Positions 9,701-39,552 of a DNA stretch of 64,000 nucleotides are shown here, one piece after another; position 1 is the first letter of the stretch; every line of letters starts with the position of its first letter. Under the pieces are notes generated by a model. The model was given only the letters and a program-made list of their open reading frames with translations, did no database searches and was not told the origin of the DNA. The position numbers were made by a program, and so were the translations under genes. The stretch lies in sequence record NC_023719.1; one strand, written 5' to 3'.

Positions 9701-9801
9701 ATAAAATTAAGGTTAGGGGTAAAACCCTATCCTTTTTTATTAAAAAACCGTTTACAAAATGATAGTTATATGATATAATAAATATATAAATAAGAAACGG
9801 A

Positions 9802-16615: not shown

Positions 16616-16715
16616 CATAGGGGGGATTAATTCCCTCTTTTTTTATTTAATTTTTAAAAAACAGTTTACATAATACTAGTTATATGATATAATAAATATA
16701 TAAATAAGGAATGGA

Positions 16716-21162: not shown

Positions 21163-21239
21163 ATTGCCTCTTTTTTATTTAAAAATAGTTTACATAACGC
21201 TATTGGTGTGATATAATTAATTTATAAGGTAATACTAAA

Positions 21240-22558: not shown

Positions 22559-22648
22559 ATCCCTCTCTTTTTTTTTTATAAAAACAGTTTACATAATGCT
22601 AGTTATGTGATATAATAAATATATAAATAAGGAATGGAGTGGTTTTAA

Positions 22649-22969
22649 ATGATGAAAATGCAAGATAAGATTTTAAATCATATTGATAAAATAGCAAGTG
22701 ACAATAGTTTTGAAGCAACTATTTCATATTCTGCTTCTAATGTAGGTAAAGTATTCATTATAGATGATTATTTTAAAAGTGTTTTAATTATTTCATTTAA
22801 TTTCCAAACACAATATTGTACAATAACAAGTACTGATTGTGCTGAAGTGGCTAAACCAAATTGTAGCAATAGTTATTTAGAATATAAAAATTCAGATGAG
22901 CTTAATCGTTTGTTTGATAACATTGGTCAATACTTGCACAAAGTTTATTGGTCAAGTAATATGGAATAG
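22649..22969 (+). CDS. hypothetical protein, paralog of 21678
   Basis: MQDKILNHID...FEA. Confidence 0.85.
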   Translation: MMKMQDKILNHIDKIASDNSFEATISYSASNVGKVFIIDDYFKSVLIISFNFQTQYCTITSTDCAEVAKPNCSNSYLEYKNSDELNRLFDNIGQYLHKVYWSSNME

Positions 22970-23055
22970 AGGGATTAATTTCCCTCTAATTTTTAAAAAA
23001 TAGTTTACATAATATTGTTAATGTGGTATAATAAATATATAAATAAGGAAATGGA

Positions 23056-23388
23056 GTGTTAGTAATGACATTAATTACAAACGAAATTAAAGAAAAGATT
23101 GAACAATTAGTGATAAGTAAAAAACAAGCTAGACGTCTCGCTTATACTGTACAGGAAACAGAAAAGTATATTGAACGAAATGAACGAGGATTAGCGGGGG
23201 CTAAAGAAGCACTTGAAGAGTTAGAAAAACACGATAATAAATTCCCAATAGGAATAGGTTTAATGTCGGGTCAAATAGAAGAGTTTAGTAATGCTTTAAA
23301 ACATAACAAATTTGAAAGAGATAGAGCTTTTCAATATTTAACAAATATCCTTAATAAAGGGGAAAATTTCGTACATAAGGCAGAGTGA
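23056..23388 (+). CDS. coiled-coil hypothetical protein
   Basis: Cassette ORF. Confidence 0.8.
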   Translation: MLVMTLITNEIKEKIEQLVISKKQARRLAYTVQETEKYIERNERGLAGAKEALEELEKHDNKFPIGIGLMSGQIEEFSNALKHNKFERDRAFQYLTNILNKGENFVHKAE

Positions 23389-23455
23389 TCTGCCTTTTTT
23401 ATTTGTTTGGATATTTTCAGTTTACATCAGATAAATGGTATGATATAATGTAAAT

Positions 23456-23878
23456 ATAAATAAAGGAATGAAGATTTAAGAACTGACAGAGTCACAGGGT
23501 GATTCTAATAAGGAATCAAATAGTTGATTATTTACTAGAGGTATAACCCTCAATTTGATGTTTACTCCCATCAAAAAAATTTTCTTTTTTCTTTCTTTCT
23601 TGTCACATGGAACTTGTATCTATTCATGGAGATACAATGAAACTCTGAGTTGATGGTTTAAAGAGTTTCGAAGTTTATCTTGAGCATTAGACTTTTTCTA
23701 ATGTTGAATATAAACTACTCTTTAGATCAAGTGGTTTATGCACTATCACTTCCTCTAATTTATTTACCTTATATGGAGCCCTCATCTAAGAACGTTATGG
23801 AGATGAGCAGTAAGTTTGGCAGATGCGGTTTTGGAACTTACACTAAAAGAGATATCTTAAATGATATCTCTTTTTTTA
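23456..23878 (+). ncRNA. candidate multi-hairpin sRNA from its own early promoter
   Basis: Promoter 23421-23449, no RBS-led ORF, about 10 consecutive stems, terminator 23847-23878. Confidence 0.6.
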
Positions 23879-23968
23879 TTTTGTTTAAAAATATTGTTTA
23901 CGTGATTCGATTTTTATGATATAATGTAAATATAAGGAATACCATAAAAAATCGAGGAGGTACCAGAA

Positions 23969-24526
23969 ATGGGACAAGTAAAAAAACAATTAAGAAGCGA
24001 TGCATGGACAGAGAAAGATGATAAATATTTAGTAGAAACAGTAATTAAATTTGTGCAGCACGGTTTCCCTCAATTAAGAGCTTTTGATGAAGCAGCTGCG
24101 AAATTAAAAAGAACACCATATGCGTGTGGGTATCGTTTCAATCAATTCTTAAGAAAAGAATATGCTGAGGAAATTGAAGCAGCAAAATCAATCGCGCTTA
24201 AAAATAAACAAAGTGTTGTTAAGACTGCCACTTTTGTTCCAGAAGTTACAAACGTACCAAAAGTAGGATCAATTGGAAAAAGTGATATAAGTGATCAAAT
24301 CTCAGTTATTATAGAAGGTGTTCAGCAATTAGAAAATCTTGTTACAGATTTAGAAGTTAGTACCAAGCAAAACGAGCACTTAGCAGTTGAAAATAAAGAA
24401 CTAAAAGAAGAAAATGCTGGGTTAAAAAATGATAAGGAAATCTTATTAGAAGAAAATAAGCAACTAAGAGACAGAGTACAAGACTTCGAAAGCGTATTGA
24501 TGCAACTTAAATCACTTAATTTCTAA
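23969..24526 (+). CDS. rsfA: RsfA-family sporulation transcriptional regulator
   Basis: RSDAWTEKDD..L.ETV...QLRAFDEAAAKLKRT..ACGYRFN..LRK; coiled-coil tail. Confidence 0.85.
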   Translation: MGQVKKQLRSDAWTEKDDKYLVETVIKFVQHGFPQLRAFDEAAAKLKRTPYACGYRFNQFLRKEYAEEIEAAKSIALKNKQSVVKTATFVPEVTNVPKVGSIGKSDISDQISVIIEGVQQLENLVTDLEVSTKQNEHLAVENKELKEENAGLKNDKEILLEENKQLRDRVQDFESVLMQLKSLNF

Positions 24527-24537
24527 GGAGTCTATAT

Positions 24538-24936
24538 ATGGGAAAAGTTAAAGTAATGGCCAAGCGAGTAAGGGTAGAATATACTTTGTATGGTAGTCGC
24601 GATGAGGTTTATGCTGGCAAGTACCATAATGAAGCAGGAGAAAAGGTGCTTTGGGAGGGTGAATTAGATTTTACGCTCCAAAAATATGAACATTTGTATA
24701 TTAAAGAATTAGATCTAGAAGTACAGATAAAAGAAATATCTAAACAAACAGATGGCATTGTTTATTATACTAATGTTACTGAAGAGTTTGAGGATGAGAG
24801 AACAGAAGAGAGTAGAATTGAAGCTGAAAGAGACGCTAAGAATCATAATCTTTGGATTCAAGAAAAGAAAGAAGCGCTTAAAGAAGAGCGTTTAATGAAT
24901 AGAATTAAAAAGAAAATCAAAAATTTATTTTCTTAG
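24538..24936 (+). CDS. hypothetical protein
   Basis: AAGGAG RBS; operon. Confidence 0.8.
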   Translation: MGKVKVMAKRVRVEYTLYGSRDEVYAGKYHNEAGEKVLWEGELDFTLQKYEHLYIKELDLEVQIKEISKQTDGIVYYTNVTEEFEDERTEESRIEAERDAKNHNLWIQEKKEALKEERLMNRIKKKIKNLFS

Positions 24937-25010
24937 AAGTCTTATTAAATATTAGAGTTTGATTTTTTTCAAACTCTTTTTTATTTTGACACTGAAAGTG
25001 AGCGATTAGC

Positions 25011-25538
25011 ATGGAAAAAAGAGTAAATAAGTTTTCAAAAGATCCAACAAAAATAAGATTGTATTTACTTATAGGTTTGTTAATGGTTCTTATTGCTTCA
25101 TTAGTATTGATTTTCATGGTAGAAAATGTATTAGATGATACAACAGTTGCTGTAGATACAGAAGCTCAAAAGACTTTAGATAAAGCGTATGAAGATAAAT
25201 CATATATGAGTTTCAATGTAACTGAAGAAGACTTTCAAAATATGTTACATAAGATGACACATCAAAAAGTTATAGCAACATTAAAGTATGGATCTATTAA
25301 ATTGACTGAAAAGAATGTTAAGGGTATGCTAGTTATTTTAGATCAAAATGAATATAAGCATGAAGATTTATATAGAGAAATTTTAAATGAGTGGGAAGAA
25401 AATGATTTTAGTAATATAATTGAAAATCATAATGATGTTTGGGAATTACTTGGAGAACCTGATGGAAAAGCAATATCAAAAGCAAGTGGAAGTAAAGAAA
25501 GAAAATTCATAGAGAAGAACTTTAAACAGAATGATTAA
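25011..25538 (+). CDS. DUF6241-like membrane-anchored protein
   Basis: N-terminal TM; LHKMTHQKV...KYG...HNDVWELLG..GKA. Confidence 0.75.
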   Translation: MEKRVNKFSKDPTKIRLYLLIGLLMVLIASLVLIFMVENVLDDTTVAVDTEAQKTLDKAYEDKSYMSFNVTEEDFQNMLHKMTHQKVIATLKYGSIKLTEKNVKGMLVILDQNEYKHEDLYREILNEWEENDFSNIIENHNDVWELLGEPDGKAISKASGSKERKFIEKNFKQND

Positions 25539-25850
25539 TTCATTCTGTTTTTAATTTTTTAAGGATATATAAAATAATACAAAAATACATACAAAATCAC
25601 CCTGTGATTAAAGTGAATCACTAAAGAATAATCTATTTATAATAGGAAAAAATAAAAAATTTAGTAAAATAGAATACAGTGCACAGCACTTATCTTTATA
25701 TATTTCTTTTATATATTATCTATAATATTAATTATATTTATAGCTGCACACTTTGAATCAAACTGCACCTTTTGAATTAGTTTTTATAAAAACAGTTTAC
25801 AAACTATACTAATGATGATATAATGTATATATAAGGAAGGAGAATACAAA

Positions 25851-25940
25851 ATGGAAATAGAAATAATGTTCGTTGTTATGTTTGTTTTGCTTTTTACCTT
25901 AGTTGGTTTTGTTATAGATGGAATAAAAAATGGAAAGTGA
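25851..25940 (+). CDS. 29-aa single-TM micropeptide (not in track)
   Basis: Promoter + AGGAG RBS; MEIEIMFVVMFVLLFTLVGFVIDGIKNGK. Confidence 0.65.
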   Translation: MEIEIMFVVMFVLLFTLVGFVIDGIKNGK

Positions 25941-26189
25941 GTGATTGTTATGCATAATGTAGAAATGGAAACAATTGAAATTAAGTATGTTGAACATGAA
26001 GGGAATGAACTTTTAGATTTCTTAAGGGCTTATACAGAAGATGAAGAAGTACAGGGCAATACTAAAATTGTCAAGTATGAAGTTCCTTCATCTTGGATTG
26101 AGAAAGTAATCAAGCCTTTTATTGAATCATATAATGAAATGGCGAGTATTAACGAGTCAAGCGCTAAAATCATTTTAGATCTCCCTTAA
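25941..26189 (+). CDS. hypothetical protein
   Basis: Operon ORF. Confidence 0.75.
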   Translation: MIVMHNVEMETIEIKYVEHEGNELLDFLRAYTEDEEVQGNTKIVKYEVPSSWIEKVIKPFIESYNEMASINESSAKIILDLP

Positions 26190-26287
26190 AAAGGAGATCT
26201 TTTTTAAAAAAATAGTAACATAATTGGCCGATACATAATATAATAAATATATAAGGAAATAAAAATTAAAAACGAAGGGAAGATGGA

Positions 26288-26743
26288 ATGAAAATCGAAA
26301 TTAAATTATTTGAGCCAAGAGGTATTACGAAAAATGGTGATGATTTAAGTTTCGTGTTAGACCCACATAATTTTAAAGTAGCTTTTAATGAATATAAAGA
26401 GCAATTTGTATTAATAGAAGGCAAGCGTTTTACAGTTAATCTTAATGACTATCAAATAGCAGGTAGAAATGATAAGTTAATGTTATGTAATAGTACTTTA
26501 CACGCGGTAGAGATTTCATTGGCAAGATTAATTGATTGTTCAAATATAGTAGATCACTTAGTAAAGTTTTTAATGGAGTATAATAGTTGTGTACCCGCAA
26601 AAGAAATAAGTGAATTAGTACAAGAAATGGAACTTATGAATATTAATCGTTTAATAGATGGTTCATTATTATTGAAAGATAAGAAAAAGTTTTATGAGTT
26701 AATTGAATATAAAAACAACTTATTAGGTAAGCAGGAAGTTTGA
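26288..26743 (+). CDS. protein with C-terminal IDEAL-like domain
   Basis: NRLIDGSLLLKDKKKFYEL. Confidence 0.65.
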   Translation: MKIEIKLFEPRGITKNGDDLSFVLDPHNFKVAFNEYKEQFVLIEGKRFTVNLNDYQIAGRNDKLMLCNSTLHAVEISLARLIDCSNIVDHLVKFLMEYNSCVPAKEISELVQEMELMNINRLIDGSLLLKDKKKFYELIEYKNNLLGKQEV

Positions 26744-26820
26744 AACGGGATTCCCACTGTTTTAAAAAGAGTAGCTAATTATAATATAATATATAAATAA
26801 CAAGATACAGAGGTAATGAT

Positions 26821-27018
26821 ATGAAGACAAAACTAATTAAGATAAGCACATCACAGTGGGAAGTACATAATAAAGAAAATGGTAAAATAGCTAATATAGA
26901 ACAAGTTTTTCATAATCATGGTAGTTCTTATCAAGTAGAGATTGATGGAGAATTAGAGGCTAAGAATTTAACAAACTTTCATCAAGCTAAAAGAAAAGCT
27001 GTACAACTTATTAAATAA
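26821..27018 (+). CDS. hypothetical protein
   Basis: GAGG RBS; terminator. Confidence 0.75.
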   Translation: MKTKLIKISTSQWEVHNKENGKIANIEQVFHNHGSSYQVEIDGELEAKNLTNFHQAKRKAVQLIK

Positions 27019-27117
27019 GAGAGGGATTTATTCCTTCTCTTTTTATTAAAAAATTGTTTACAATTACATAGAATTTGATATAATATATATATAAGGAGAA
27101 TACAAAGGAGGTTCATT

Positions 27118-27573
27118 ATGATTACGATTCAGTATATGAAACCATTTTATCAAAAAGTTAGTGCTAATGGAGAAACGTTAAGGCTTGTTTTCGCTTTTCA
27201 GTATTTCTCTATTTCAAAAGATCAAGAGATATTTCATTTTATCCCTATTGAAGGTAAAGAAGTAATTATTGATTTAAAGCAAAGAACAATTAAAAATATG
27301 TCTGAAGTCTTTGTTTTCCAAAAGGGTAATAGATTTATTAGATTACCTTTGTATCAATTAGCTTTGATTTCTAATTTTGATGAAATGTTAAGTGAGTTTA
27401 TTGATAAACATGAACCTAAAATTAATAAAATTGAAGTTACAAGAGAAGAAGCGAGTGAGTTGATGATTCAACTTGAAAATGCTAATATTGATAACTTAAT
27501 TGATATCGCTTTAGATAACAAAGACGAAGAAGCTTTTTATACTTTAGTGGCTCAAAAACAAAAGGGAGAATAA
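27118..27573 (+). CDS. IDEAL domain protein, host-like
   Basis: MKPFY..LRLVFAFQYFSI..VFQKGNRFIRLPLYQL; LIDIALDNKDEEAFYTL. Confidence 0.8.
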   Translation: MITIQYMKPFYQKVSANGETLRLVFAFQYFSISKDQEIFHFIPIEGKEVIIDLKQRTIKNMSEVFVFQKGNRFIRLPLYQLALISNFDEMLSEFIDKHEPKINKIEVTREEASELMIQLENANIDNLIDIALDNKDEEAFYTLVAQKQKGE

Positions 27574-27661
27574 TTTCTCCTCTTTTTTATTTAAAAACAG
27601 TTTACAAAGTACTAACCTTTTGATATAATATATATATAAGGTATTAAATATTATTGAAGGA

Positions 27662-28165
27662 GTGTTGAGTATGAATTATTGTAAAGTATTAGTAAAACCT
27701 TTCATGGTTAAGAAGCCTGGTGGAATGCCAATGAGAACGATGTTTGGAACAATTGTTAACGAGACAGCGAAAGCAATCCAAGTAAAGTTATATTGCAAAC
27801 CAGAGAAAAGCAGCGTATGTTTACATTGTAATCGTAAGTTAACACACCCTATTAGTAAGCTTTATGGACTTGGTCCAATATGCGGGCAGCATTATTACAT
27901 TGCTCCATTCCAATCTGAGGAAGCGTTGGAAGAAGGGTATAATGAATTAGATTCAAAACTTAAATCTATTACTTGGGAAGGTTGGATTCCAAAATCTCTA
28001 ATAATGGATTTAGAAAGACTAGAAGATTCAGCTGTGGAAGAACAAAGATTTGAAGTATCGTTTAAGTTTGATGGTCAATTATATAAGTCTGTTGTTGGAA
28101 AAGAAAACTTAAATAAAATTAGACATCATTCAGAAGAGATTGTGGAATTAGTGCAAATAAGTTAA
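27662..28165 (+). CDS. DUF6011-like zinc-binding protein
   Basis: CLHCNRKLTHPISKLYGLGPICG. Confidence 0.75.
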   Translation: MLSMNYCKVLVKPFMVKKPGGMPMRTMFGTIVNETAKAIQVKLYCKPEKSSVCLHCNRKLTHPISKLYGLGPICGQHYYIAPFQSEEALEEGYNELDSKLKSITWEGWIPKSLIMDLERLEDSAVEEQRFEVSFKFDGQLYKSVVGKENLNKIRHHSEEIVELVQIS

Positions 28166-28262
28166 GGGGGAGAAATAATCTCCCTTTTTTATTTGAAAAC
28201 AGTTTACAAAGTCAAGATATGTGATATAATTAATATATAACCAATACTAAAGGGGAAACCAA

Positions 28263-28370
28263 ATGGGTATATTGAAACTTATAATGGATGGATTTAATCT
28301 TGTATTTAGAGTGGTCGGATTTATTACTTTCATAATTATTCTTGTAGCATTATATTACTTATTTACTTAA
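28263..28370 (+). CDS. 35-aa TM micropeptide (not in track)
   Basis: Promoter + GGGG RBS; VFRVVGFITFIIILVALYYLF. Confidence 0.6.
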   Translation: MGILKLIMDGFNLVFRVVGFITFIIILVALYYLFT

Positions 28371-28382
28371 GGAGAGATATTG

Positions 28383-28466
28383 ATGAAAAACAACAATGAC
28401 GATTCATTGCTTTTGATTACGTGTATGATATTAATGGTTTTAGTAGTTATTCTAGCAATGTTTTAA
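28383..28466 (+). CDS. 27-aa TM micropeptide (not in track)
   Basis: AAGGAG RBS; LLLITCMILMVLVVILAMF. Confidence 0.6.
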   Translation: MKNNNDDSLLLITCMILMVLVVILAMF

Positions 28467-28554
28467 AAAATAGTTTACAAATAGTGATAGCTATGATATA
28501 ATTAAATCATAAGGAATAGGAAATAATAATAAAAACAGATTAGGAGTGGTTTAA

Positions 28555-28773
28555 ATGAAGAATTTTGTTAAGTTCGCAATTTTAGCAGTTATGATGGCGG
28601 TAGTGATTAATCAATTATTTGTATCAGCTGAAAGTAATACTGAAGAAGAATATAAACATGCTTATTCATCAAACGCTCAAATCAAGCAAGATAGACTGGA
28701 TGAAATCCTAGAAGATGGAATCATTGATCATACAGAAGAAGCTGAATATAAAGAATTAACAAAAGACTTCTAA
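28555..28773 (+). CDS. small secreted or membrane-anchored protein
   Basis: Signal-peptide-like N-terminus. Confidence 0.75.
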   Translation: MKNFVKFAILAVMMAVVINQLFVSAESNTEEEYKHAYSSNAQIKQDRLDEILEDGIIDHTEEAEYKELTKDF

Positions 28774-28790
28774 AAGGAGTCTTTTTTTAT

Positions 28791-28862
28791 GTCACCAGAG
28801 ATTGGTTCAGGTGAATCAAAATTTATTAAATAATATATATCTATTATTCGTTGTTTCTGAAA
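28791..28862. repeat. Dispersed inverted-repeat element, copy 9
   Basis: 26 bp identical to 9171-9196. Confidence 0.85.
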
Positions 28863-28917
28863 AACAATTTACAAATAGGGAAAAACGTGGTATAATATAT
28901 ATATAAGGAGTGATAAT

Positions 28918-29223
28918 ATGTTAGAAGGATACAATGAAAAGGAACTTCTTAGTATATTTGTTGATTATTTATATTCTCAGTCATCACAGTGTGATTTTAA
29001 ATTAGAATTAAATAGTTTATATATGGTCGGTAGTAGAGTGACTCAGACAAATAGAAATGATAGTGATTTAGATATAATATTGGTTTATTCTAATTCAATT
29101 AAAGATTATGTAATGCATGAAATATTAAATGAAGAGCTATTGTACGTAGATGGGATAAGAATAGACTTTATTCCATATAAAGATAGAGTTGAATTAAATG
29201 GAAAGTATATACGATTACTATAG
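28918..29223 (+). CDS. minimal nucleotidyltransferase (Pol-beta superfamily)
   Basis: LYMVGSR, DSDLDI, RIDF. Confidence 0.8.
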   Translation: MLEGYNEKELLSIFVDYLYSQSSQCDFKLELNSLYMVGSRVTQTNRNDSDLDIILVYSNSIKDYVMHEILNEELLYVDGIRIDFIPYKDRVELNGKYIRLL

Positions 29224-29236
29224 AGGAGTGATAAAG

Positions 29237-29650
29237 ATGAGGCTAAACGTTAGAAGAAGACATAAACCAGATATAATTGAACAGAGAAAAGCAGAGAATT
29301 TAAAAAGAAAAGATGAAGTTGATAAAGTAGAAGAGCTTATATCTAATGCGTTTTTAATGAAAGCTTTAGTTAATGGTTGGGAACTTAAAATTAATAAGCC
29401 ATCTCACTATGCAGTCCCTGTAATAGAAGTTGAAGTTAATGGTAAACTAATTCTTGACATAACGTTTAAGCAACAAGAGATAAGTGAGATATGGGCAGAA
29501 ATAACAATGTCTCACCTTGAGTATAAAGAGAAATTTGAAGAATTTAATTATCGTTATAGTAGCAGTTATTGTTTAAAGAATGATACTCAAATAACTAAGT
29601 TTATGGATATTATGGCTGAGTGCTATGAACATTATGTAACAACTTTATAA
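29237..29650 (+). CDS. hypothetical protein
   Basis: Track 29198; likely ATG 29237 after GAGGAG. Confidence 0.75.
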   Translation: MRLNVRRRHKPDIIEQRKAENLKRKDEVDKVEELISNAFLMKALVNGWELKINKPSHYAVPVIEVEVNGKLILDITFKQQEISEIWAEITMSHLEYKEKFEEFNYRYSSSYCLKNDTQITKFMDIMAECYEHYVTTL

Positions 29651-29706
29651 AAATAGTTTACAAATAGCCACTACTATGATATAATTAAATTATAAATAAT
29701 AAAGGA

Positions 29707-30054
29707 GTGGTTAATATGTTAGATAAAAAAGCAAAGGTGATTTTAAGGGAGTTAATTAGATCAAACAATGCATCTTATTTAGTAATTCTTAAAAGTTTTT
29801 ATCCACATGGTTCCTGTACTAATCCTTGCGTAAAAGCAAGAGATTTAGGAGCAAACTATGAAATTTGGGCAGATATTTACAAGTTACACGAAAGATACAG
29901 AAGATTCCGTTATTATATGAGTGACATTAAACCTCAATGGAAAGATGTTGAAACAATTCCATATGCTGATAATTCAGTAGAAGTAATACAAGAAAATATA
30001 AATGGAGAAAGAAGAAAGATAATGACAAAAGCTCCATCGGGAGACATTTGCTAA
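29707..30054 (+). CDS. hypothetical protein
   Basis: Cassette ORF. Confidence 0.8.
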   Translation: MVNMLDKKAKVILRELIRSNNASYLVILKSFYPHGSCTNPCVKARDLGANYEIWADIYKLHERYRRFRYYMSDIKPQWKDVETIPYADNSVEVIQENINGERRKIMTKAPSGDIC

Positions 30055-30149
30055 GAGGGATTAATTCCCTCTTTTTTATTTAAAAACGGTTTACAAATAA
30101 ATAGTAGTATGATATAATAAATATATAAATAAAGGATGGAGTGAGTTAA

Positions 30150-30554
30150 ATGGAACTTAAAGATTTTAATTTAAATGAAGTAACAATGAAATTAGTTGAT
30201 TATGTATATCTAGAAAGACAAGATATCATAAAGAAAGCATTTGAAGTGGGGAGAAAGATTAAACTTAAACATTCTACTTGGGGAGCGCCTGAAAAATATA
30301 TAGAGGAATGCGAATCATTTTTACTTGAAGGTCAAGTAGTTGAATTGGATGGTTCACATTATAAGTTACCAGCAGGAGCTGAAATAGAAATAGTTAAAGG
30401 CTTATATGGAAGTAAAACTGAGTTTGCTGGTGGAGCTGGGATTGATTTTAAGTATAAAGATGTTGTTTTTGCAAGTGATTTATTTCCAATTTGGGAAGAT
30501 GAAAAAGAATTTGAGAATTTTTTTAGTGAAGAATTTCTAATGACATTTTTATAA
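30150..30554 (+). CDS. hypothetical protein
   Basis: Cassette ORF. Confidence 0.85.
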   Translation: MELKDFNLNEVTMKLVDYVYLERQDIIKKAFEVGRKIKLKHSTWGAPEKYIEECESFLLEGQVVELDGSHYKLPAGAEIEIVKGLYGSKTEFAGGAGIDFKYKDVVFASDLFPIWEDEKEFENFFSEEFLMTFL

Positions 30555-30573
30555 AATTAAGGAGTGAGTTTAG

Positions 30574-30861
30574 ATGCAATTATCAGATGAGTTATATGAA
30601 ACTCAAGTATTTGTAGGTAATGATGATTTAAGTGACTATAAGATTGTGTGGTTACAAGAAACAAATGAACAAGAATTTGAAATAGACTTTATTGAAGAAC
30701 CAGAACCAGAAGAAGAGGAAGATGGATTTGAAAGTTTGTATGATTTAATAATCGCCTGTGCAGAATCCCAACCACGTTTCGTAAGACTTATAAGAAAGTC
30801 AACTGGTGAAGAGCATTTGGTATTTGACCAAAATAACAATTCAATATTATTAGATGATTAA
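30574..30861 (+). CDS. acidic hypothetical protein
   Basis: AAGGAG RBS. Confidence 0.8.
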   Translation: MQLSDELYETQVFVGNDDLSDYKIVWLQETNEQEFEIDFIEEPEPEEEEDGFESLYDLIIACAESQPRFVRLIRKSTGEEHLVFDQNNNSILLDD

Positions 30862-31106
30862 TGATTTTCAAAAACCTCTTTTTGTGTTATAATAAACATA
30901 TAACATGAAGGAGGTTTTTGTTTTGAGTAAATATACATATGATTTTAGAGTTGAGCCTATTGAAAGACTTAGTAATCAATTACCAAGTAAGGAACAAACT
31001 TGTCAGAAATCTAAGAAATCAAACAAAACTTCTTTTAAAGAAATATTGAAAAACAGTTTACAAAGTACTAGTAATATGATATAATTAAATTATAAATAAA
31101 TAAGGA

Positions 31107-31373
31107 GTGGTAAATATGAAAAAAGTAAGACAAATGGATATAGTTTTAGGAGTAAACGTTAAATGGGATAGTATGTTTGATGATGAAGAAGAATTAATTA
31201 AATATTTACGAAGTGTAGATGTTGAAAAATTCAAAAGAGATCATAGAAAAGGTTATGCGTATGTTGAAGGGTTCCAGAAACAGCTTGAAAGTGGAAAAGA
31301 ATTAAGCCCAAAGCAAGTAACTCAACTTAAGAGAATTGCAAAAGAGATTTATCGATACCACTTAAACTTTTAA
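31107..31373 (+). CDS. hypothetical protein
   Basis: Cassette ORF. Confidence 0.8.
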   Translation: MVNMKKVRQMDIVLGVNVKWDSMFDDEEELIKYLRSVDVEKFKRDHRKGYAYVEGFQKQLESGKELSPKQVTQLKRIAKEIYRYHLNF

Positions 31374-31495
31374 ATAGAGGGATTAATTTCCCTCAGTTTT
31401 TTGTAAAAACATTAAAAAACAGTTTACATCAAAACAATGATGTGATATAATTAATTTATAAATAAAATAAATTTACTCAATTGGAGGAATATAAA

Positions 31496-31870
31496 ATGGA
31501 AATGTTTCAAAAATTCAATGAATTATCAAAATTAAACACTGGTGACAAAGTTAAATTAACAAATGGTGAAGTTGCTGTATTTACAAAACTTAAGCGAAAA
31601 AACTTTGAAGGAACAATTGATGATAAAGCTTTTAATATCCCAATTGAGATGTTTGTAGAAGTAATTGAAACAGTAGATGTAAATGCAAAAGATGGAGAAA
31701 TTGTTTCATTAAAGAAAGGAGAGCCTTTCTTTATAAATAAAAATGGAAATGCACTGCTATTTACTTTTGAAAAAATCGAAAATGGAAGAATTATTGGAAT
31801 CAATCCTGTTTCTAAAAGCAGAACAAGAATTGATAAAAGTTTATATGCGGGTAAAGTAGAGGGTATCTAA
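31496..31870 (+). CDS. hypothetical protein with two SH3-like halves
   Basis: Track 31481; ATG after GGAGG; KLNTGDKV and LKKGEPF halves. Confidence 0.75.
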   Translation: MEMFQKFNELSKLNTGDKVKLTNGEVAVFTKLKRKNFEGTIDDKAFNIPIEMFVEVIETVDVNAKDGEIVSLKKGEPFFINKNGNALLFTFEKIENGRIIGINPVSKSRTRIDKSLYAGKVEGI

Positions 31871-31944
31871 CCCTCTTTTTTTTTGCCTTTAAATTCTTTA
31901 ACAATTATTTATATATTTATTATATAAAAATTGGAGGGAATAAA

Positions 31945-32409
31945 ATGAAGGCAAAAGAAAAAGCTCTTAAATATTTATCTGGTTATCCAGAAAGATATCC
32001 AGAAGGTTATACAAAAATAGACTCATTAATAGAGCCTTTATGTAAGCTTCTAACTGAAAAAGGTTACGTAACTTTGCATTCTTGTTCCAGTCATGTTAGA
32101 ATAAGAAGTTATAAAAAATCTATGTTTACAAAAGTAGAAGAGGATGAAAGATTTTTTAGCCCTTTTCTTGGGTGGTATGTATCTTTTGTGGTAACTCACT
32201 CTATAAAAGATATACAAAAGGCTGTAAAGATCATTAATAAAAAGTACGGTTATGGTATAAGAGTTTACAAACGACCAGCATTTCAAGGTGTAACTAGAAG
32301 ATGGATGTTAGAGAAGTTTATAGATACGTCTTGGAATGATGATAAAATTTATGAGTTGAATAAAAATGTATATTTAGAATTTAAAAAGTTTTTTGAAGAA
32401 TTAAATTAA
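31945..32409 (+). CDS. hypothetical protein
   Basis: GGAGGG RBS; TLHSCSSH motif. Confidence 0.8.
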   Translation: MKAKEKALKYLSGYPERYPEGYTKIDSLIEPLCKLLTEKGYVTLHSCSSHVRIRSYKKSMFTKVEEDERFFSPFLGWYVSFVVTHSIKDIQKAVKIINKKYGYGIRVYKRPAFQGVTRRWMLEKFIDTSWNDDKIYELNKNVYLEFKKFFEELN

Positions 32410-32480
32410 GCTCTCTTTTTGGTCTTTATGTTGATTGATTTTTATATAATATATAAACAATCAGTTAACGGAGGGAATGT

Positions 32481-32861
32481 ATGAGAAAGAAAACCAATGT
32501 GGTGAGTATTTTTGATTCCGATAAGAGTCAACTTGTTTTATCTGAAGAATTGATTTGGTTCTTCAAACAAGCTTTTAGATCAAACTTGCTTTGTGTTAGA
32601 AAAGACGGTGATGAAGTAGCTTTATTCGAATCGCATATTAATAGAAGTAGCTTAGATGAATACTTAGATTGCGACTTTTCTACTGATGATTCTACGATAA
32701 GAGTAATTATTGACTCCTTTGAACATGAAAGTTTTAAACTCGAATTAATGGAAGAAATAAATGATTTCCTATTTAAAGAAAGATTTGATTTAAGAATTAG
32801 CAATATATATTATGAGTACGATGATTTAAGGATAAAATTAATAGTAGCCTGTTTAGAGTAA
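32481..32861 (+). CDS. hypothetical protein
   Basis: GGAGGG RBS. Confidence 0.8.
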   Translation: MRKKTNVVSIFDSDKSQLVLSEELIWFFKQAFRSNLLCVRKDGDEVALFESHINRSSLDEYLDCDFSTDDSTIRVIIDSFEHESFKLELMEEINDFLFKERFDLRISNIYYEYDDLRIKLIVACLE

Positions 32862-33082
32862 AAAGTTTAAAAAAATTAAAAAAAGTTACAAAAAACAGTT
32901 TACATTACACAGAAATAGGATAAAATATAATTATATAAGGCACCAGGTACTAACTAAGAATAAAAATGAAAGGAGAGAAAAAGTTAAAAAAAATTAAAAT
33001 AAGGTATTTACAATACCAAGAAAACATGGTATAATAAAATTATAAATAAAAATAAAACAAAAACAAATTGGAGGAATGAAAA

Positions 33083-33892
33083 ATGGAAACAATTAAAAAG
33101 ATGGAATTATTACCTGAAAGCGCTGGGTACCGCGATGCTGCTAAAATTGCAAAAGAATTAGGTATTGCTTATGTTGGAGTTAGTAAAGGCGATTTAATCA
33201 CTAAAGTAAATGAAAAAATTGAAAAAATTAATAATGGCGAAATTGAAGTACCAGTTATTGAAGAAACTGCAGATCCAGTTGACTCTAAAGATACAACAAA
33301 TGAAGAAACTGTTGCTAAACCAGCAGGAACTGAAAGTCCGGCTCAACAAGCTGCACAAACTGCAAGAGCAAAACGTGAAAAAGCTCCAAAAGTTGAAGTT
33401 AAAAAATGGTACGAAGAAGAAGGTGCAAACCCTTACGAACCAGGTGATGTAGTTAAAATCATTGGTGGTAAAGACTTAATTGGCCGACTACTTAAAACAA
33501 TTGAACCATCAACTAAAAAAGATATGATCAAAGGTAAGTTAATCCACCCAGTAACTGGAAAATTACAAAATACAGTAATTTCAATTGCATTCGAACGACT
33601 TGAATTACATCAAAAAGCTGCAGAAGCAGAAGCTGCTGAAAAAGCAAAGGTTGAAGCAGAAGCTGCGGCAACAAATGTTGAACAAGCTACTGAAGCTCCA
33701 GTAAACCAACAAGCTCAAGTTGAAGAAGTAAAAAATGAAGAAGTAACTCAAACTGAAGATCAAGAAGTAAAAGAAGTAAATGAAAATCCTGAAAATCAAG
33801 AAAACAAGGAAGAAATTACTGCTGGCGCAGAAGAAGAAATTACTGTGAAACAAGAAGATGAGCAGCAAAATGAAGTAAAAGAAGCTGAATAA
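33083..33892 (+). CDS. paralog family A protein with long acidic tail
   Basis: Homologous to 11971 and 40972; tandem promoters upstream. Confidence 0.9.
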   Translation: METIKKMELLPESAGYRDAAKIAKELGIAYVGVSKGDLITKVNEKIEKINNGEIEVPVIEETADPVDSKDTTNEETVAKPAGTESPAQQAAQTARAKREKAPKVEVKKWYEEEGANPYEPGDVVKIIGGKDLIGRLLKTIEPSTKKDMIKGKLIHPVTGKLQNTVISIAFERLELHQKAAEAEAAEKAKVEAEAAATNVEQATEAPVNQQAQVEEVKNEEVTQTEDQEVKEVNENPENQENKEEITAGAEEEITVKQEDEQQNEVKEAE

Positions 33893-33942
33893 AAAACATA
33901 TAAACAAGGGCTGCGCTTCATGTGTGGCTCTTTTTATTTGAT

Positions 33943-34028
33943 TTTCACCAGAAAATACATAAAAATCAGTTTAATATAAATAATATAAACATAAAAACAA
34001 AAATCTCTGAGGGAATCTCAGTGACCCA
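33943..34028. repeat. Dispersed inverted-repeat element, copy 10
   Basis: TCACCAGA...ATATAAATAATAT...CTCTGAGGGAATCTCAGTGA. Confidence 0.75.
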
Positions 34029-34348
34029 AGGAAACAATTCGGATATATATTCATAATATCATAATCAATAAATTAGTTTTTACTAAAAAATATCAAAAAG
34101 TTGTTTACAAAGTATGTATTTTATGATATAATGATAGTATACTAAAAAGCAAAGGTATGGGATGTAATGACTAGTAAAGATTTCTTAGAGACTTGGCATG
34201 GACAAAGATTTCAAGAAAGACTTTTGAAATCATTAGAAACTATTGGTAGTGAATTAAGAAGAGCAAATGATTTAAAAGAAGAAGAATTAATAATGCACAA
34301 AAAAGACTCTACTAAAAAGTAGAGTCTTTTTTATTTACAACAAATAAA

Positions 34349-34630
34349 CTAGAAGGGAGGTAAGTTTGATAAGTTGTTGCTAGGGTCGCCATCTGGATAA
34401 GAACGTAAAGTTTTTCTTCTTTCTTTACCTCTTGTGGTACCAGTATTGACGTCCTCTATTAAATCTTGTTCTGCCATTACAATAGCTTCATCTATGGAGG
34501 CGATTTGGCCGTTTTGAAACTTAACTTCTGATATATCTCCATCGTCATCTTTCCTTACTGCTACAATTTGTAACTTTTTTGGATCTATATGATGCTTAGG
34601 GTTATTAACTCCACGATTTTGATAAGTCAT
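34349..34630 (-). CDS. DUF3892-like protein
   Basis: IVAVRKDDDGDISEVKF.NG...LRSYPDGDPSNNLSNLP; ATG 34630 after AAAGGAG. Confidence 0.8.
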   Translation of the reverse strand: MTYQNRGVNNPKHHIDPKKLQIVAVRKDDDGDISEVKFQNGQIASIDEAIVMAEQDLIEDVNTGTTRGKERRKTLRSYPDGDPSNNLSNLPPF

Positions 34631-34784
34631 ATAAGTTTCTCCTTTGTAATGATTTATTTTCCTTACATGATTATTATAACCCAAGAGTTCCCAATAATAC
34701 ATTGTTTTTTAATTTAAAAAACAGTTTACAAATGGTAGATACTAGGTTATAATTAATATATAAATAAGGAATGGAGTGGTTTAA

Positions 34785-35003
34785 ATGGAAGATAAATTAT
34801 TGGCTTCAAGTTCAACTGATGATATTGAGATTGAAATCTATGAAAACGGGATTACAGTTAATGGGAATTTCTTATCTACAAAAGATGTAGCGGATTCTTT
34901 AGACAAGATAGATGATTTCCTTACACTATCTGGAATTGAGTCTCAATGGGTAATACAAGATTTAGATGAGCAAATGGGTGCAGAAGAAGACGAAGAGGAG
35001 TGA
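34785..35003 (+). CDS. acidic hypothetical protein
   Basis: Cassette ORF. Confidence 0.8.
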   Translation: MEDKLLASSSTDDIEIEIYENGITVNGNFLSTKDVADSLDKIDDFLTLSGIESQWVIQDLDEQMGAEEDEEE

Positions 35004-35008
35004 TGTAA

Positions 35009-35650
35009 ATGTTTCAAGAAGTTATTGAAAAAACTCATGATTATAAAATTTTAGCTATAGGACGCGGATATGATGAAAGTAAAGCGACTGCGTACCGAAA
35101 TTATAAAGTTATACATTATTGGTATAAGGGTAAATGTTATTTAGTAAACATGTTTGGACAATATTATTATTTAGAAAGAATAGAGAAGAATCCTGACTTA
35201 AAAGAATTTAGTCATGAATTGTATTATGAAGCTAGAGCGATATTAGCAAGAAATGATGCACCCCGTAGGGTAAAATCATTAAAGGAAAAAGGACAAACAA
35301 AAACTCAAATAATGAATATGTTATCATGGTATGGAACTATAAAGTTAAGGGCAATTTGCGATGAATTAGAAGTAAAATATGATAACAAAGAGTCTAATGG
35401 GAAATTGAAACAAAAAATAGTTGATGCGTTAGGATTAAGTACTAAAAGTGATAAAGGTAAAAAGATAGTTGTTATTGTTGATACTATTGTCAAAGATAAT
35501 ACTTTTAATATTCGGGTTGAAGATGATGAATCTAAAGAAGTTACTGAACATACAAAATTAGGATTAACTTCTGAAGAATTAAATAAGTATACTGCTAAAT
35601 TGTTAAGTAAATTAAAAACAACAAATCTTAAAATTAATATTATAAATTAA
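35009..35650 (+). CDS. hypothetical protein with internal Rho-N/HeH-like helical motif
   Basis: IKLRAICDELEVKY...KLKQKIVDAL. Confidence 0.75.
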   Translation: MFQEVIEKTHDYKILAIGRGYDESKATAYRNYKVIHYWYKGKCYLVNMFGQYYYLERIEKNPDLKEFSHELYYEARAILARNDAPRRVKSLKEKGQTKTQIMNMLSWYGTIKLRAICDELEVKYDNKESNGKLKQKIVDALGLSTKSDKGKKIVVIVDTIVKDNTFNIRVEDDESKEVTEHTKLGLTSEELNKYTAKLLSKLKTTNLKINIIN

Positions 35651-35661
35651 AAAAAGAGGTC

Positions 35662-36201
35662 TCATGAAGAGACTTCTTTTGCTATATAATTTTCTTTTTT
35701 GATATAGAAAATTAAGTGAGTATCTTCTATTTTACCTTTATAGAACTCTCTTAACTCAGTATCTTCTGCAAAACTCATTTGTTTAATGTAAGAAATCTTA
35801 TTACAAGCCGCTATAGATCTTTCATTGTGTTTTCTAACAAGTAGGTAAATTGTATCAAGATGCGGTAGCGCAAATAGCTCATCAAAGAATAATTGTTTAG
35901 CTATTTGATTATATCCTCTTCCCCAGTGATTTTCCCCAATGACAGTAGCAAGAAACCCTTCTTGTCTAAAGAATGAATAGTCCCATAAGATAATTAGTCC
36001 AACTACGATATCCTCTTCGTTGATAATAACTCTAGGAATAACTCTTAATTCGTTTTCTTCGTTTTGTAAATACTTAATCATTTCTCCCATTTCCTCTACA
36101 GAGGTGGGTTTTAAACGAGAATACCTTGAGACGCAAGGATTAGAAAGATGGGAATAGAGAATAGCAGCATCGGATAGTTGAACTTGACGTAATGTCGTCA
36201 T
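35662..36201 (-). CDS. RimJ/RimL-like GNAT acetyltransferase
   Basis: LRQVQLSDA, HWGRGYNQ, HNERSIAA; ATG 36201 after GAGGTG. Confidence 0.85.
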   Translation of the reverse strand: MTTLRQVQLSDAAILYSHLSNPCVSRYSRLKPTSVEEMGEMIKYLQNEENELRVIPRVIINEEDIVVGLIILWDYSFFRQEGFLATVIGENHWGRGYNQIAKQLFFDELFALPHLDTIYLLVRKHNERSIAACNKISYIKQMSFAEDTELREFYKGKIEDTHLIFYIKKENYIAKEVSS

Positions 36202-36465
36202 AATTATCACCTCACGCCTCTGACTTAAAGTCACGAGTTATTTTATTTTTATCAACACATTTCTTGACGTAATAGTATATATGAAAAAAACAAAAAAATA
36301 ATAACAACCATTTGCGTCATTTTGTATGATATAATTTTATTATATAATGATATTAAATCATTTTTTTGACTTTGTAAATAGATTCTCCAAAATTATTTTT
36401 TATTTAAAAAACTATTTACAAATTAATGAATACATGATATAATAAATATATAAATAAGGAATGGA

Positions 36466-36942
36466 GTGGTAAATATGAATAGTTTACTCATTAATGCTTG
36501 GGATCAAACTAAACAGGAAGAAAAACAAACTAAAAAAGCATCAAAGGATTATAAATATTATTGTTTTTTATCATCAAAGGTTACAGGAGTAGAACAACAA
36601 CATTTGTTTTTCAATAATCCAAATGAATTAGACTTTGATCTGGATACAAAAGAATATATTATGGAATATTGTCAAGAAATAAATAAGGAAGCAATGTTTA
36701 TGAACAAAAAACAAATTAAAGAAATGCTTTGTTCAATGAATTTTAAGGAAGTTACTTTCCAAAGAAATGGAAACCTTAGATTAGTTTCAAATTTAATTTA
36801 TGAAAATGAAGAAACTTGGGAAAACTTTGGAAAACAACTTGAAGAAGTGATTTCAATTCTTCCACCAGGTTATATAAGTGGTAAATTTACTACTGTGGAA
36901 AAAGATATTTATTGCGGAGCTAATATTAGTTTATATATTTAA
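36466..36942 (+). CDS. hypothetical protein
   Basis: Cassette ORF. Confidence 0.8.
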   Translation: MVNMNSLLINAWDQTKQEEKQTKKASKDYKYYCFLSSKVTGVEQQHLFFNNPNELDFDLDTKEYIMEYCQEINKEAMFMNKKQIKEMLCSMNFKEVTFQRNGNLRLVSNLIYENEETWENFGKQLEEVISILPPGYISGKFTTVEKDIYCGANISLYI

Positions 36943-36982
36943 GTTTAATTAAATTCCACTAATATCATATATATAATCAGAG

Positions 36983-37180
36983 GTGATATTAGTGGAATTT
37001 AAAACTACAAGAGAAATAACTATAGAAAATCTTAATAGCATTCTAATTATTCCCGAAGGTGCTACTTTATATCAAATACCTAATGATCATTTAGGGAATG
37101 TTAGAGATGTTAATCATTATAGTTGGAATGGGGAAATCATTGCTATTGAGAAAGACTCTGATTCAGTAGAAAAAGTTTAG
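36983..37180 (+). CDS. hypothetical protein
   Basis: GAGGTG RBS. Confidence 0.7.
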   Translation: MILVEFKTTREITIENLNSILIIPEGATLYQIPNDHLGNVRDVNHYSWNGEIIAIEKDSDSVEKV

Positions 37181-37186
37181 AGGAGA

Positions 37187-37582
37187 GTGTTTTATATGTT
37201 AGCTATTGAAAGTTTTGCAGGGTTAAAAGGGATAATGGAAAAAGACTCTGGTGAAAGTTTAGATATGTATGAACATTGGGATCGTTTATTTATCAATGGT
37301 CAAGAAACAGAATTGATGTTACGATTCTTCAATCATACAAGTACATTAGTAATTGCTCGTATCAAAGTAAAAAATCGACGTACTGGTGTAGCCACTTCTA
37401 TTCTTGATTGGCTGAAAGAATACGCTAAACAAAACAAAATCGCTAACATTGCACTAGAAAGTACAACTACTCATGAGATCAATGCGTTTGCTGAAAAGCA
37501 TGGTTTTGAGAAAATCGAACAACAAGGGATGTACTATGAAGGAGTATTTTTTGGCAACTGGAATTTATCCTTAAATAATTGA
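37187..37582 (+). CDS. GNAT-family acetyltransferase
   Basis: VIARIKVKNRRTGVATSILDWL; NAFAEKHGF. Confidence 0.8.
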   Translation: MFYMLAIESFAGLKGIMEKDSGESLDMYEHWDRLFINGQETELMLRFFNHTSTLVIARIKVKNRRTGVATSILDWLKEYAKQNKIANIALESTTTHEINAFAEKHGFEKIEQQGMYYEGVFFGNWNLSLNN

Positions 37583-37668
37583 TTAAAAACAGTTTACAAT
37601 ACAATGTTTGTATGATATAATATATATATAAGGTAATAAAAATTCCAACATTGAAAGGATTCGATATC

Positions 37669-37857
37669 ATGCCACTATTATGCGAAGGTGAAACTGTAGA
37701 ATATAACCAAAAACATGCTTTAGAAGTTTTAACTGAAACAGAAGCAGTAATGCTTGATATGCTGGTTTCAAAAATACAACAGTACTCTGAAGATAAGATG
37801 ATTGAAAATTTCCATGAGAACAATGCTAAATGTACTGTTTATGCTCATAGTAAATAG
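37669..37857 (+). CDS. small hypothetical protein
   Basis: Promoter at ~37592-37620; AAAGGA RBS before ATG 37669. Confidence 0.55.
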   Translation: MPLLCEGETVEYNQKHALEVLTETEAVMLDMLVSKIQQYSEDKMIENFHENNAKCTVYAHSK

Positions 37858-38065
37858 CAGGGAGTTTTCCCTGCACCTTCTAATAAGGATTTAAATACTT
37901 TAAGTCTTTATTAGAGGGTCTCACTCCACCCTCTCGATATCATTCGATATTAGTATTACCTTTATATGGAACTGAGGACTGTAGCACCATGGAAGTCTCC
38001 AGAGAACTAGTTGGTATGTGGTTTGGGTTCTCACTTAAAAGACAGATAATTATCTGTCTTTTTTT
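37858..38065 (+). ncRNA. tandem-hairpin 3'-UTR or sRNA candidate upstream of tnpB
   Basis: Consecutive stems GCAGGG/CCCTGC, CTAATAAGG/CTTTATTAG, GAGGGT/ACCCTC, GAGAAC/GTTCTC; terminator 38037-38065. Confidence 0.5.
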
Positions 38066-38118
38066 ATTTAAAAAATATGTACTTTCTTTCTATAATTAAA
38101 ATAGAAAGGAGGGAAACC

Positions 38119-39318
38119 ATGAAACGTTCTAAATTAATTAGGATTTCTAAAAATAATAGTAAATATAAATTAATAGATTCTTTATCTTTAAAATCTAAAA
38201 ACTTGTATAATTACGCTAATTATTTAATTAGACAAGAGTTTATTTTAAATGGGAAATGGATAAGATATAATGAATTAAATAAAAGATTAAAAGAAGAAAT
38301 AGTATATAAAGAATTACCAATCCAAACATCTCAACAAACACTCATGTTATTGGATAAAAATTGGAAATCTTACTTTAACTCGATAAAAGATTGGTCTAAA
38401 AATAAAAGTAAATATTCAGGCAAACCAAAACTACCTAAGTATAAAAAGAAAGATGGGAGATTTAATGTAGTTTTTACTAATCAACAAGCAAAACATAAAA
38501 ATGGGATTATTAAAATTTGTCCAGCAAGTTTGGATCTTATTTTTAATATCAATATTGAAAACAAAATAAAACAAATTCAAATAATACCTAAAAATAATTT
38601 TTATCAATTGGAAATAATCTATGAAATTGATAAAAAAGAAGTGGAATTAAATGACGAATTATATTGTGGGATTGATTTAGGAATTAATAATCTTATAACT
38701 TTAACAGATAACCTGCATAATAATCCAATTGTTATCAATGGTAAAATTATTAAGTCTATAAATCAATATTACAATAAGAAAAGAGCCGAAATACAATCTA
38801 CTTTACTAATAAAAAATAAAAAAACTTGGTCAAATAAGCTAACTCAATTAACTGAAAAAAGAAATAATAAAATAAAAGATTATATGCATAAGAGTTCTAG
38901 ATATATAATTAATTATTGCTTATCTAATAAGATAAAAACAATAGTGATTGGATATAATCAAAATTGGAAAGAAAGACTTATTGTCTCAAAACAACAAAAT
39001 CAAAATTTCTTTCAAATTCCTTATTTAACTTTAATTGAAATGATACAATATAAAGCTGAAGAATATGATATAGATGTTATACTAACTGAAGAATCTTATA
39101 CTTCCAAAGCTAGTTTTTTAGATTTAGATGAGATGGAAAAAGATTTTAAATTTAATGGAGAAAGAATAAAAAGAGGATTGTATAAGACTAATAATGGTAT
39201 TTTAATAAATGCTGATGTAAACGGTTCTTATAATATAATTAGAAAAGTAGCTCCAAATGTTTTTACAGATGGAGTAGAGGGTGTAAAGTTACATCCATTG
39301 AAAATTAATTTTTCATAA
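38119..39318 (+). mobile_element. tnpB: solo TnpB (IS200/IS605 family, IS1341-like) RNA-guided nuclease
   Basis: GIDLGINN (RuvC-I), IVIGYN, TEESYTSK, NADVNGSYNI (RuvC-III), GVEGVKLHP tail; no tnpA nearby; ATG 38119 after AAGGAGG. Confidence 0.9.
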
Positions 39319-39431
39319 ACTTATAACTAGGAACTCCGATTGTATCATAATATAGATGATGTAAAGATACCTTTAATGGTATCTTTTTTATTTGTCTTCT
39401 ATCTCTATAACCTAATAGTTTACTATGGTAA

Positions 39432-39552
39432 ACACATACGCTCGCGCGTGTGTATATGTACTACACGTATGCATCTGTGCATCTATGTGCTCGTATATAC
39501 GTATGTGCATGTATACGCGCTTGCTATATATATACTTACGTACATGTATATG
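39432..39552. repeat. alternating purine-pyrimidine tract
   Basis: ACACATACGCTCGCGCGTGTGTATATGTAC...TACATGTATATG. Confidence 0.85.

Follow-up and report, generated by a model that had tools for sequence, protein, structure and literature searches.

The last 64 kb of the Bacillus phage G genome (NC_023719/JN638751, 497,513 bp) contain two predicted non-coding RNAs, here called RNA A and RNA B, which belong to one structured RNA family with an invariant single-stranded core. This core is exactly complementary to the 5' end predicted for a subset of the phage's early mRNAs, and the complementarity is conserved along with it in related phages. The best-supported reading, which we favour tentatively, is that the RNAs may base-pair in trans with early leaders. 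This 64,000-nucleotide (nt) stretch is called the window below. Its base 1 is genome base 433,514, and positions are window positions on the + strand unless stated otherwise. An earlier note on this DNA had proposed that two RNAs with an exposed segment antisense to the early leader shut off early genes. The complementarity it described is exact and the core turns out to be invariant in the family, whereas the early-to-late switch that it built on this is speculation.

RNA A (23456-23881, about 425 nt) is an independent non-coding unit lying between the terminator of gp630 and the promoter of gp631. It has a predicted promoter (23421-23449; TTTACA-17-TATAAT with a TG extension) and a predicted terminator (23845-23881), and no gene is annotated between the two. 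RNA B (37858-38070, about 213 nt) has no promoter of its own. It begins after the stop codon of gp661, where it makes up the untranslated 3' portion of that mRNA, with an intrinsic terminator predicted at 38037-38069. The early promoter of this joint transcript is at 37593-37621, with AUAAGGUAAUAAAAAUU at the transcript start. Compared with shuffled sequences, the folding z-scores are -4.4 for RNA A and -4.0 for RNA B. The two segments singled out by the earlier note, TTACCTTATATGGA at 23764-23777 and TTACCTTTATATGGA at 37956-37970, are exactly where it placed them, and the motif that they share, TTACCTT[T]ATATGGA, has just these two matches in the 497,513 bp of the genome. They are also largely exposed, as it had supposed, the mean predicted probability of being unpaired being 0.65 for both.

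The earlier note regarded the two RNAs as otherwise unrelated. That was wrong, as they are homologous over the whole length of RNA B. Within the genome, blastn aligns 23503-23541 of RNA A with 37878-37917 of RNA B (80%) and 23823-23881 with 38016-38069 (73%), and pairwise alignments place the elements of both in one order, the stems still being able to pair despite their sequence differences. RNA A and RNA B are thus paralogous members of a structured RNA family that had not been described before. Of 21 loci obtained by a gapped-pattern search of metagenomes, most proved to be chance matches in coding sequence, but non-coding homologues of the same architecture were found in loci L040/L059, L041 and L058, the last of which has a second copy. 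This adds four members to the family (L040/L059, L041, L058a and L058b). Open reading frames (ORFs) on these contigs have 30-43% identity to proteins of the phage G early region, and the contigs derive from distant relatives of phage G.

A covariance model built from the identical L040/L059 pair alone recovers the other members, with E values of 1e-19 for L058a, 8e-14 for RNA A (core at 23737-23882), 7e-13 for RNA B (core at 37929-38070), 1e-10 for L041 and 1e-8 for L058b. There is a clear gap between these matches and noise. Searches of the G genome found no further copy of the family, nor of a module consisting of AUGGA and a hairpin, beyond RNA A and RNA B. Nothing in the whole window matches Rfam 15 at the gathering score, and a permissive Rfam search of RNA A, L040, L041 and L058 gave chance-level matches alone (E up to 5-10). 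Among GenBank phages the family is seen in phage G itself only. Two pattern scans and one protein-based scan of IMG/VR returned coding or chance matches alone and no related phage, and searches of the literature and of public data turned up no paper on phage G RNAs, no RNA run of a phage G infection and no transcriptome or interaction data set for the phage. The Logan contigs that contain gp631 are phage G itself. They give no covariation because they are identical to it apart from one indel in a run of A.

The family fold, which is well supported, consists of a pseudoknot, two hairpins (P5 and P6) and the terminator. In the model-guided alignment, 95.4% of cells are paired and 23/31 pairs have compensatory changes. 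None of 500 shuffles reaches the observed value and slid controls reach 38-50%. The alignment was fitted to P5, P6 and the terminator, with the pseudoknot outside the model. Model guidance was required, since MAFFT/RNAalifold misplaces P5 on the raw alignments. In the pseudoknot, the 3-4 nt directly after (U)GGA pair with the 5' side of the P6 loop (92% of cells paired). Its pairs switch from G-C/C-G to A-U/U-A between two subtypes, giving 3:3 covariation at two pairs. Type I has GGAGCC (RNA A, L040 and L058a) and type II has GGAACU (RNA B, L041 and L058b). Where a phage has two copies, one is type I and the other type II, which implies that the duplication is old. The loop sequences of P5 and P6 are conserved. 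In RNA A the pseudoknot strand is 23777-80 (pairing with 23818-20), P5 is 23781-87/23801-07, P6 is 23810-16/23835-41 and the terminator hairpin is 23845-74. The corresponding elements of RNA B are 37970-73 with 38009-12, 37974-80/37994-38000, 38002-07/38027-32 and 38037-62.

Further signs point to selection acting on the RNA. One is its complete identity (142/142 nt) at two loci whose overall identity is 93.7%. Another is the blastn match between RNA B and L041 (78% over 85 nt, E 3e-8), and a third is a strain variant with a compensatory change, a U-A pair having become C-G at 23678/23710 in a long hairpin of RNA A. The variant, from public run X6, is about 1-4% divergent over window positions 22500-25150. 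It differs from phage G at 22/599 positions in neighbouring coding sequence and at 3/218 in the part of RNA A that could be compared (23639-23856). Sequence like that of phage G also occurs in several metagenomes from soil, roots, compost and gut.

No invariant block of the alignment is longer than UUACC-UUAUA, after which comes (U)GGA. In all members this block is unpaired and located immediately 5' of the pseudoknot. The earlier note had named absence of the segment from homologous RNAs as grounds for giving up its idea; the core is present in all six members. There are two small exceptions to its invariance, one extra U in RNA B (UUACCUUUAUAUGGA, 37956-37970, compared with UUACCUUAUAUGGA, 23764-23777, in RNA A) and the missing U before GGA in L058b. 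A tract resembling CCUCC, complementary to a Shine-Dalgarno (SD) sequence, lies 7-10 nt upstream of the core in 4/5 members whose 5' flank is known: CUUCCUC in RNA A (23749-55), UCCUCCA in L040 and L058a and UCCUCCG in L058b. In RNA B a CACUCC (37922-37927) is found instead, 30 nt upstream of the core in the loop of the hairpin AGAGGGU/ACCCUCU. This is the complement of GGAGUG, which the earlier note took to be the phage ribosome-binding site (RBS). It is a real one, since a start codon follows 35 of the 37 GGAGTG copies in the window. The other pyrimidine tracts that it listed are present too, with ACTCC in a hairpin loop at 23564 and CTTCCTC at 23749-55. Its tract near 19555 (ACTCC at 19551) belongs to a separate, GC-richer, gene-free region (19020-19690) outside the family, where model R1 has no significant match. 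A small ORF at AUAUGGA was considered and ruled out. There is no RBS, the ORFs are 13-49 amino acids long and not conserved, and the AUG is lost in L058b.

Small cassettes fill the window, each preceded by a near-identical host-type promoter. Counted over the whole G genome with the strict pattern TT[TG]AC[AGT]-N16-18-TA[TA]AAT, there are 139 promoter-like sites, of which 119 are + strand sites and most fall within the final 125 kb. The early promoters share an upstream AAAAACAG, then TTTACA, N17 with the TG extension, TATAAT and N5-TATAA(G/A)(G/T), as at 9735-9789, 16649-16703 and 22572-22626. N5-TATAA follows the -10 box in 119-126 of the 139 sites. ATAAGG occurs there in 68/139, ATAAGGTA in 21/139 and (T)ATAAGGTAA in 17/139. 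From the usual spacing after the -10 box, transcripts probably start at the A of AUAAGG, and the predicted start is likewise the A in the 21 (17) sites where ATAAGGTA(A) sits 3' of this box. About 90% of the promoter copies retain the start region, as do those of phages at only 30-43% identity in protein sequence, which argues that the transcript start itself is under selection.

A few of these leaders are self-complementary. The ATAAGGTA leaders at 8772, 41502 and 42466 (also 40912 and 41994) carry a downstream CCTTAT or TACCTT. A 5'-terminal cis hairpin is predicted for 3/21 ATAAGGTA leaders compared with 2% of shuffled controls, and cis pairing was therefore rejected as a general theme, being confined to a few leaders. 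The modelled hairpins are built from the bases of AUAAGG, and this indicates that sequestering such a 5' end is tolerated or useful.

The UUACCUU(U)AUA core is exactly complementary to (U)AUAAGGUAA, the predicted start of 17-21 of the 139 early-type promoters in G (UUACCUUAUA is exactly complementary to UAUAAGGUAA). The earlier note spoke of many or even dozens of such leaders. Perfect matches do exist in the plural, with 17-21 genome-wide and 12 inside the window, but the larger class of 68 sites carries ATAAGG only. On the + strand of the genome, 26/27 complements of the core are at promoter +1 positions, the exception being genome position 161140. Every related contig retains TTTACA-N17-TGnTATAAT-N5-(T/C)ATAAGG, so that core and putative target occur together.

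How strong the pairing would be depends on the flanks. The predicted duplex of the core alone is about -10 kcal/mol for RNA A (9-11 bp, AU-rich) and -8.7 for RNA B. With natural flanks the predictions are -16 to -20 kcal/mol in G, where RNA B with the leader at 21218 gives -20.3, and -18 to -23 kcal/mol in the relatives. When the flank was shuffled and the core kept constant, the natural flank did better for RNA B (p 0.02), L040 (0.04), L058b (0.012) and, by mean energy, L058a (0.024). Combined by Fisher's method (our own calculation) the p value is about 0.001, although the tests are not independent because the RNAs and leaders are homologous among the phages. What this comparison chiefly detects is the presence of a contiguous anti-SD block.

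Whether the RNA genes could target themselves is a related question. The three with their own promoter (RNA A, L040 and L058b) do not start with AUAAGG; the +1 region of RNA A, for example, is ATAAATAAAGG and not ATAAGGTAA. This fits an avoidance of self-targeting. The gp661-RNA B transcript differs from this pattern and has both the leader tag and the core. The purine-rich 5' end of RNA A, AAUAAAGGAAUGAAGA (23459-23475), is predicted to pair with its own polypyrimidine tract at 23582-23601 (P 0.5-0.9). RNA A may therefore hide its own leader-like 5' end.

How might such an RNA work? The fold of pseudoknot, P5, P6 and terminator would serve as a scaffold that displays the invariant core. Early mRNAs of the phage itself are predicted to share the 5' end AUAAGGUAA, to which the core would bind in trans, and the anti-SD tract beside the core could pair with their RBS. 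Such pairing would determine, after transcription, how well a whole class of early messages is translated and/or how stable it is. The effect could go in either of two directions. Covering the RBS would repress translation, as the earlier note proposed. Stabilization is equally possible, in that a paired 5' end would be protected from RNase J1. Features typical of small regulatory RNAs (sRNAs) are found here: a discrete non-coding transcript, by prediction (promoter and terminator for RNA A, 3' untranslated region [UTR] and terminator for RNA B), a conserved single-stranded seed within a covarying scaffold and, by sequence, complementarity of this seed to an mRNA site that is conserved across genomes.

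Several observations weigh against pairing with early leaders. The duplex formed by the core alone is weak and AU-rich, and in RNA B the core is interrupted by the 1-nt insertion. The flank of RNA A does no better than its base composition would give (p 0.4-0.6). There is no covariation between seed and target because all six cores are identical, and the co-occurrence of core and ATAAGG in the relatives is not independent evidence because the two may simply have been inherited together. Proposed regulators and supposed targets are transcribed from the same, early type of promoter. The stoichiometry is unfavourable, with 1-2 RNA genes facing 20-70 strong transcripts. In addition, the GGAG of the motif is able to pair in cis with the anti-SD tract. 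Finally, so elaborate a pseudoknotted fold would be unusual for a simple antisense RNA and would suit a protein- or ligand-binding RNA equally well.

This last point leads to the most serious rival, which we nevertheless consider unlikely. Perhaps the fold and the invariant (A)UGGA, CAUGGA and UGGUUUG motifs bind a host or phage protein, with the match to the leader secondary. Candidate partners are a CsrA-like binder of GGA motifs, RNA polymerase or a ribosomal component, and the RNA might imitate leader elements or compete with them. By our own estimate AUGGA occurs at about 10 times the expectation from base composition, with four copies in RNA A and two in RNA B. The copies always come in pairs with a spacing of 19-24 nt, the first ahead of a hairpin and the second within the loop of that hairpin, and the phage RBS AAUGGAGUG has the same AUGGAG in sense orientation. 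The conserved P5 and P6 loops and the strong conservation of a complex fold also speak for this reading. However, just two GGA motifs are conserved in the core, the contexts of both are changed in L058b, and the first overlaps the pseudoknot or Px helices in 5/6 members. Phage G does not encode a CsrA. Moreover, a GGA site leaves unexplained why an invariant 10-nt AU-rich stretch, itself free of GGA, is exactly complementary to the leader.

A second alternative is that each RNA is a cis element of its own transcript, either a 3' UTR module for stabilization or termination or a riboswitch-like leader or attenuator that gates read-through into the next gene. RNA B and L058a are indeed located in 3' UTRs. 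Downstream of the terminators of RNA B, L040 and L041 lie genes that have an RBS but lack a strong consensus promoter, and a pseudoknotted, aptamer-like fold ahead of a terminator resembles a riboswitch. We judge this improbable. Three members (RNA A, L040 and L058b) are separate units, each starting from a promoter of its own without a gene ahead of it, and full consensus promoters follow RNA A, L058a and L058b. A riboswitch or attenuator would be expected in 5' leaders of genes related in function, where its terminator would be the expression platform. Here the downstream genes are unrelated, encoding TnpB, an RsfA-like protein and a small membrane protein, and no Rfam riboswitch matches.

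The core is also an RNA copy of the template strand around the early +1 position, presented in a loop. It could in principle trap RNA polymerase as a 6S-like promoter decoy, or act as a template. The match does reach 1-2 nt upstream of the predicted start (ATATAAGGTAA), and CUCCA can pair with the UGGAG of the motif to enclose the type I core in a loop of 14-16 nt. But this closing helix is weak and is not retained in type II, there is no large bubble between long helices, and Rfam has no 6S match. Such a role is purely speculative and, in our opinion, very improbable.

It is extremely unlikely that the segment is a functionless chance match or decaying relic, whether an inverted fragment of a promoter and leader cassette or the left end of the neighbouring TnpB element of the IS200/IS605 type with its TTAC target. 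All six RNAs, from four or more phages with proteins only 30-43% identical to those of G, have the segment unchanged, no TnpB is found near the other members, and the homology of RNA A and RNA B continues upstream of TTAC. In favour of this reading, TTAC is a known IS608 target, RNA B adjoins the sole tnpB gene and the reverse complements of both RNAs resemble whole leaders. That resemblance scores only about 2 standard deviations above dinucleotide shuffles in Smith-Waterman alignments, so a relic is not needed to explain it; the idea of a whole-leader antisense image was likewise dropped as suggestive but not significant.

Returning to base-pairing with early leaders, its wider form is possible, if rather doubtful: G-like jumbo phages may tag a class of early mRNAs with a 5' AUAAGGUAA, often with the SD sequence directly after it, and a dedicated, pseudoknotted 'reader' RNA of two long-diverged types may recognize the tag through its invariant loop. 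Temporal control in large lytic phages is usually put down to proteins, namely phage RNA polymerases, sigma factors and anti-sigma factors. In phage G, with its near-identical host-type promoters (about 140), it is not obvious how their products could be shut off or treated differently from one another. A conserved RNA recognizing the 5' end that some of these transcripts have in common would provide simple global control after transcription. If this were true, one small RNA would exert such control over dozens of separately promoted cassettes, through timed shut-off or protection from 5' exonuclease, and the regulatory layer would be new for any lytic phage. Whatever the mechanism, the structured RNA family is new and well supported, combining two hairpins and a covarying pseudoknot with a single strand that does not vary. 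The family was previously undescribed, is absent from Rfam and is so far limited to a poorly sampled lineage of giant Bacillus phages.

RNA A carries about 230 bases that RNA B lacks. Its 5' domain (23488-23575) has hairpins homologous to those of the RNA B 5' domain, with the ACUCC loop at 23564-68. The extra bases comprise a polypyrimidine tract, a partial repeat of the module made of AUGGAAC and a hairpin with AUGGA in its loop, and a long hairpin found in RNA A only (23654-23729). The partial internal repeat of the family module spans 23576-23701 and is matched by the covariance model at E 0.002 (19.8 bits). It consists of the polypyrimidine tract (23578-23603) followed by CACAUGGAAC and a hairpin at 23614-23637. 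Among the relatives, an apparent peptide deformylase (L058:2233-2694, - strand, with an HEYDH motif recognized by eye) is encoded directly upstream of the type I copy.

RNA B has a neighbour that lies outside the RNA family. gp662 (38119-39318, + strand) encodes a TnpB with OrfB_IS605 and Cas12f-like TNB domains. It is the single tnpB in G, has no TnpA and is preceded by only a weak promoter-like site (38067-38096). The proteins most similar to it, at 38-48% identity, have a scattered distribution and come from Clostridia, Ktedonobacteria, archaea and several other large phages. There is no large TnpB-like ORF near RNA A, L040/L059 or L058a/b. The possibility that RNA B is an IS200/IS605 left end or a TnpB-associated RNA was therefore rejected; it is largely excluded because tnpB is single-copy in G and absent from the neighbourhoods of the other family members. 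Just downstream of tnpB and of a terminator at about 39366-39392, a stretch of about 140 nt (39420-39560) consists of alternating purines and pyrimidines (ACACATACGCTCGCGCGTGTGTATATG...). It is relatively GC-rich, unlike the rest of the phage, and lies inside annotated gp663 (39340-39579), which looks doubtful as a coding sequence. The tract could be the right end or guide region of a TnpB element, or a tract prone to form Z-DNA.

Comparison with known systems gives partial likenesses. RNA B is directly upstream of tnpB, and its TTAC and subterminal hairpin recall the left end of IS608. Even so, the homology among family members crosses the putative element boundary, and the omega RNA of IS200/IS605 elements is at the 3' end of tnpB, not upstream of it. 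The CsrB/RsmZ sponges resemble the G RNAs in being hairpin trains with (A)NGGA motifs in loops and linkers about 20 nt apart. They differ in that the two conserved GGA motifs of the G core are partly base-paired and phage G has no CsrA. In Bacillus, no sRNA that antagonizes CsrA is known.

The RoxS/RsaE-type sRNAs of Firmicutes are also structured, end in an intrinsic terminator and expose pyrimidine-rich segments complementary to SD regions. There is no homology in sequence or structure (no Rfam match), and the G RNAs are phage-encoded and pseudoknotted, with a core that is AU-rich rather than C-rich. Their target would be a tag common to many transcripts, unlike that of RoxS/RsaE. On the yflS mRNA, RoxS pairs at the extreme 5' end, which blocks RNase J1, stabilizes the message and activates its expression (PMC5419742). 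Pairing therefore activates in that case, whereas the earlier note proposed shut-off for the G RNAs.

Functional parallels are also seen in the c4 RNA of P1/P7 and the CI RNA of P4. These small RNAs act in trans on early or lytic transcripts of their own phage, whose leaders contain short complementary sites in repeated form. The G RNAs would do the same by prediction, as phage RNAs directed against early leaders of their own phage. There is no homology between them, and c4 and CI are processed from the same operon and control one or two operons of temperate coliphages. A lytic Bacillus phage of 497 kb would, by contrast, use its RNAs to address some 20 or more separately promoted cassettes.

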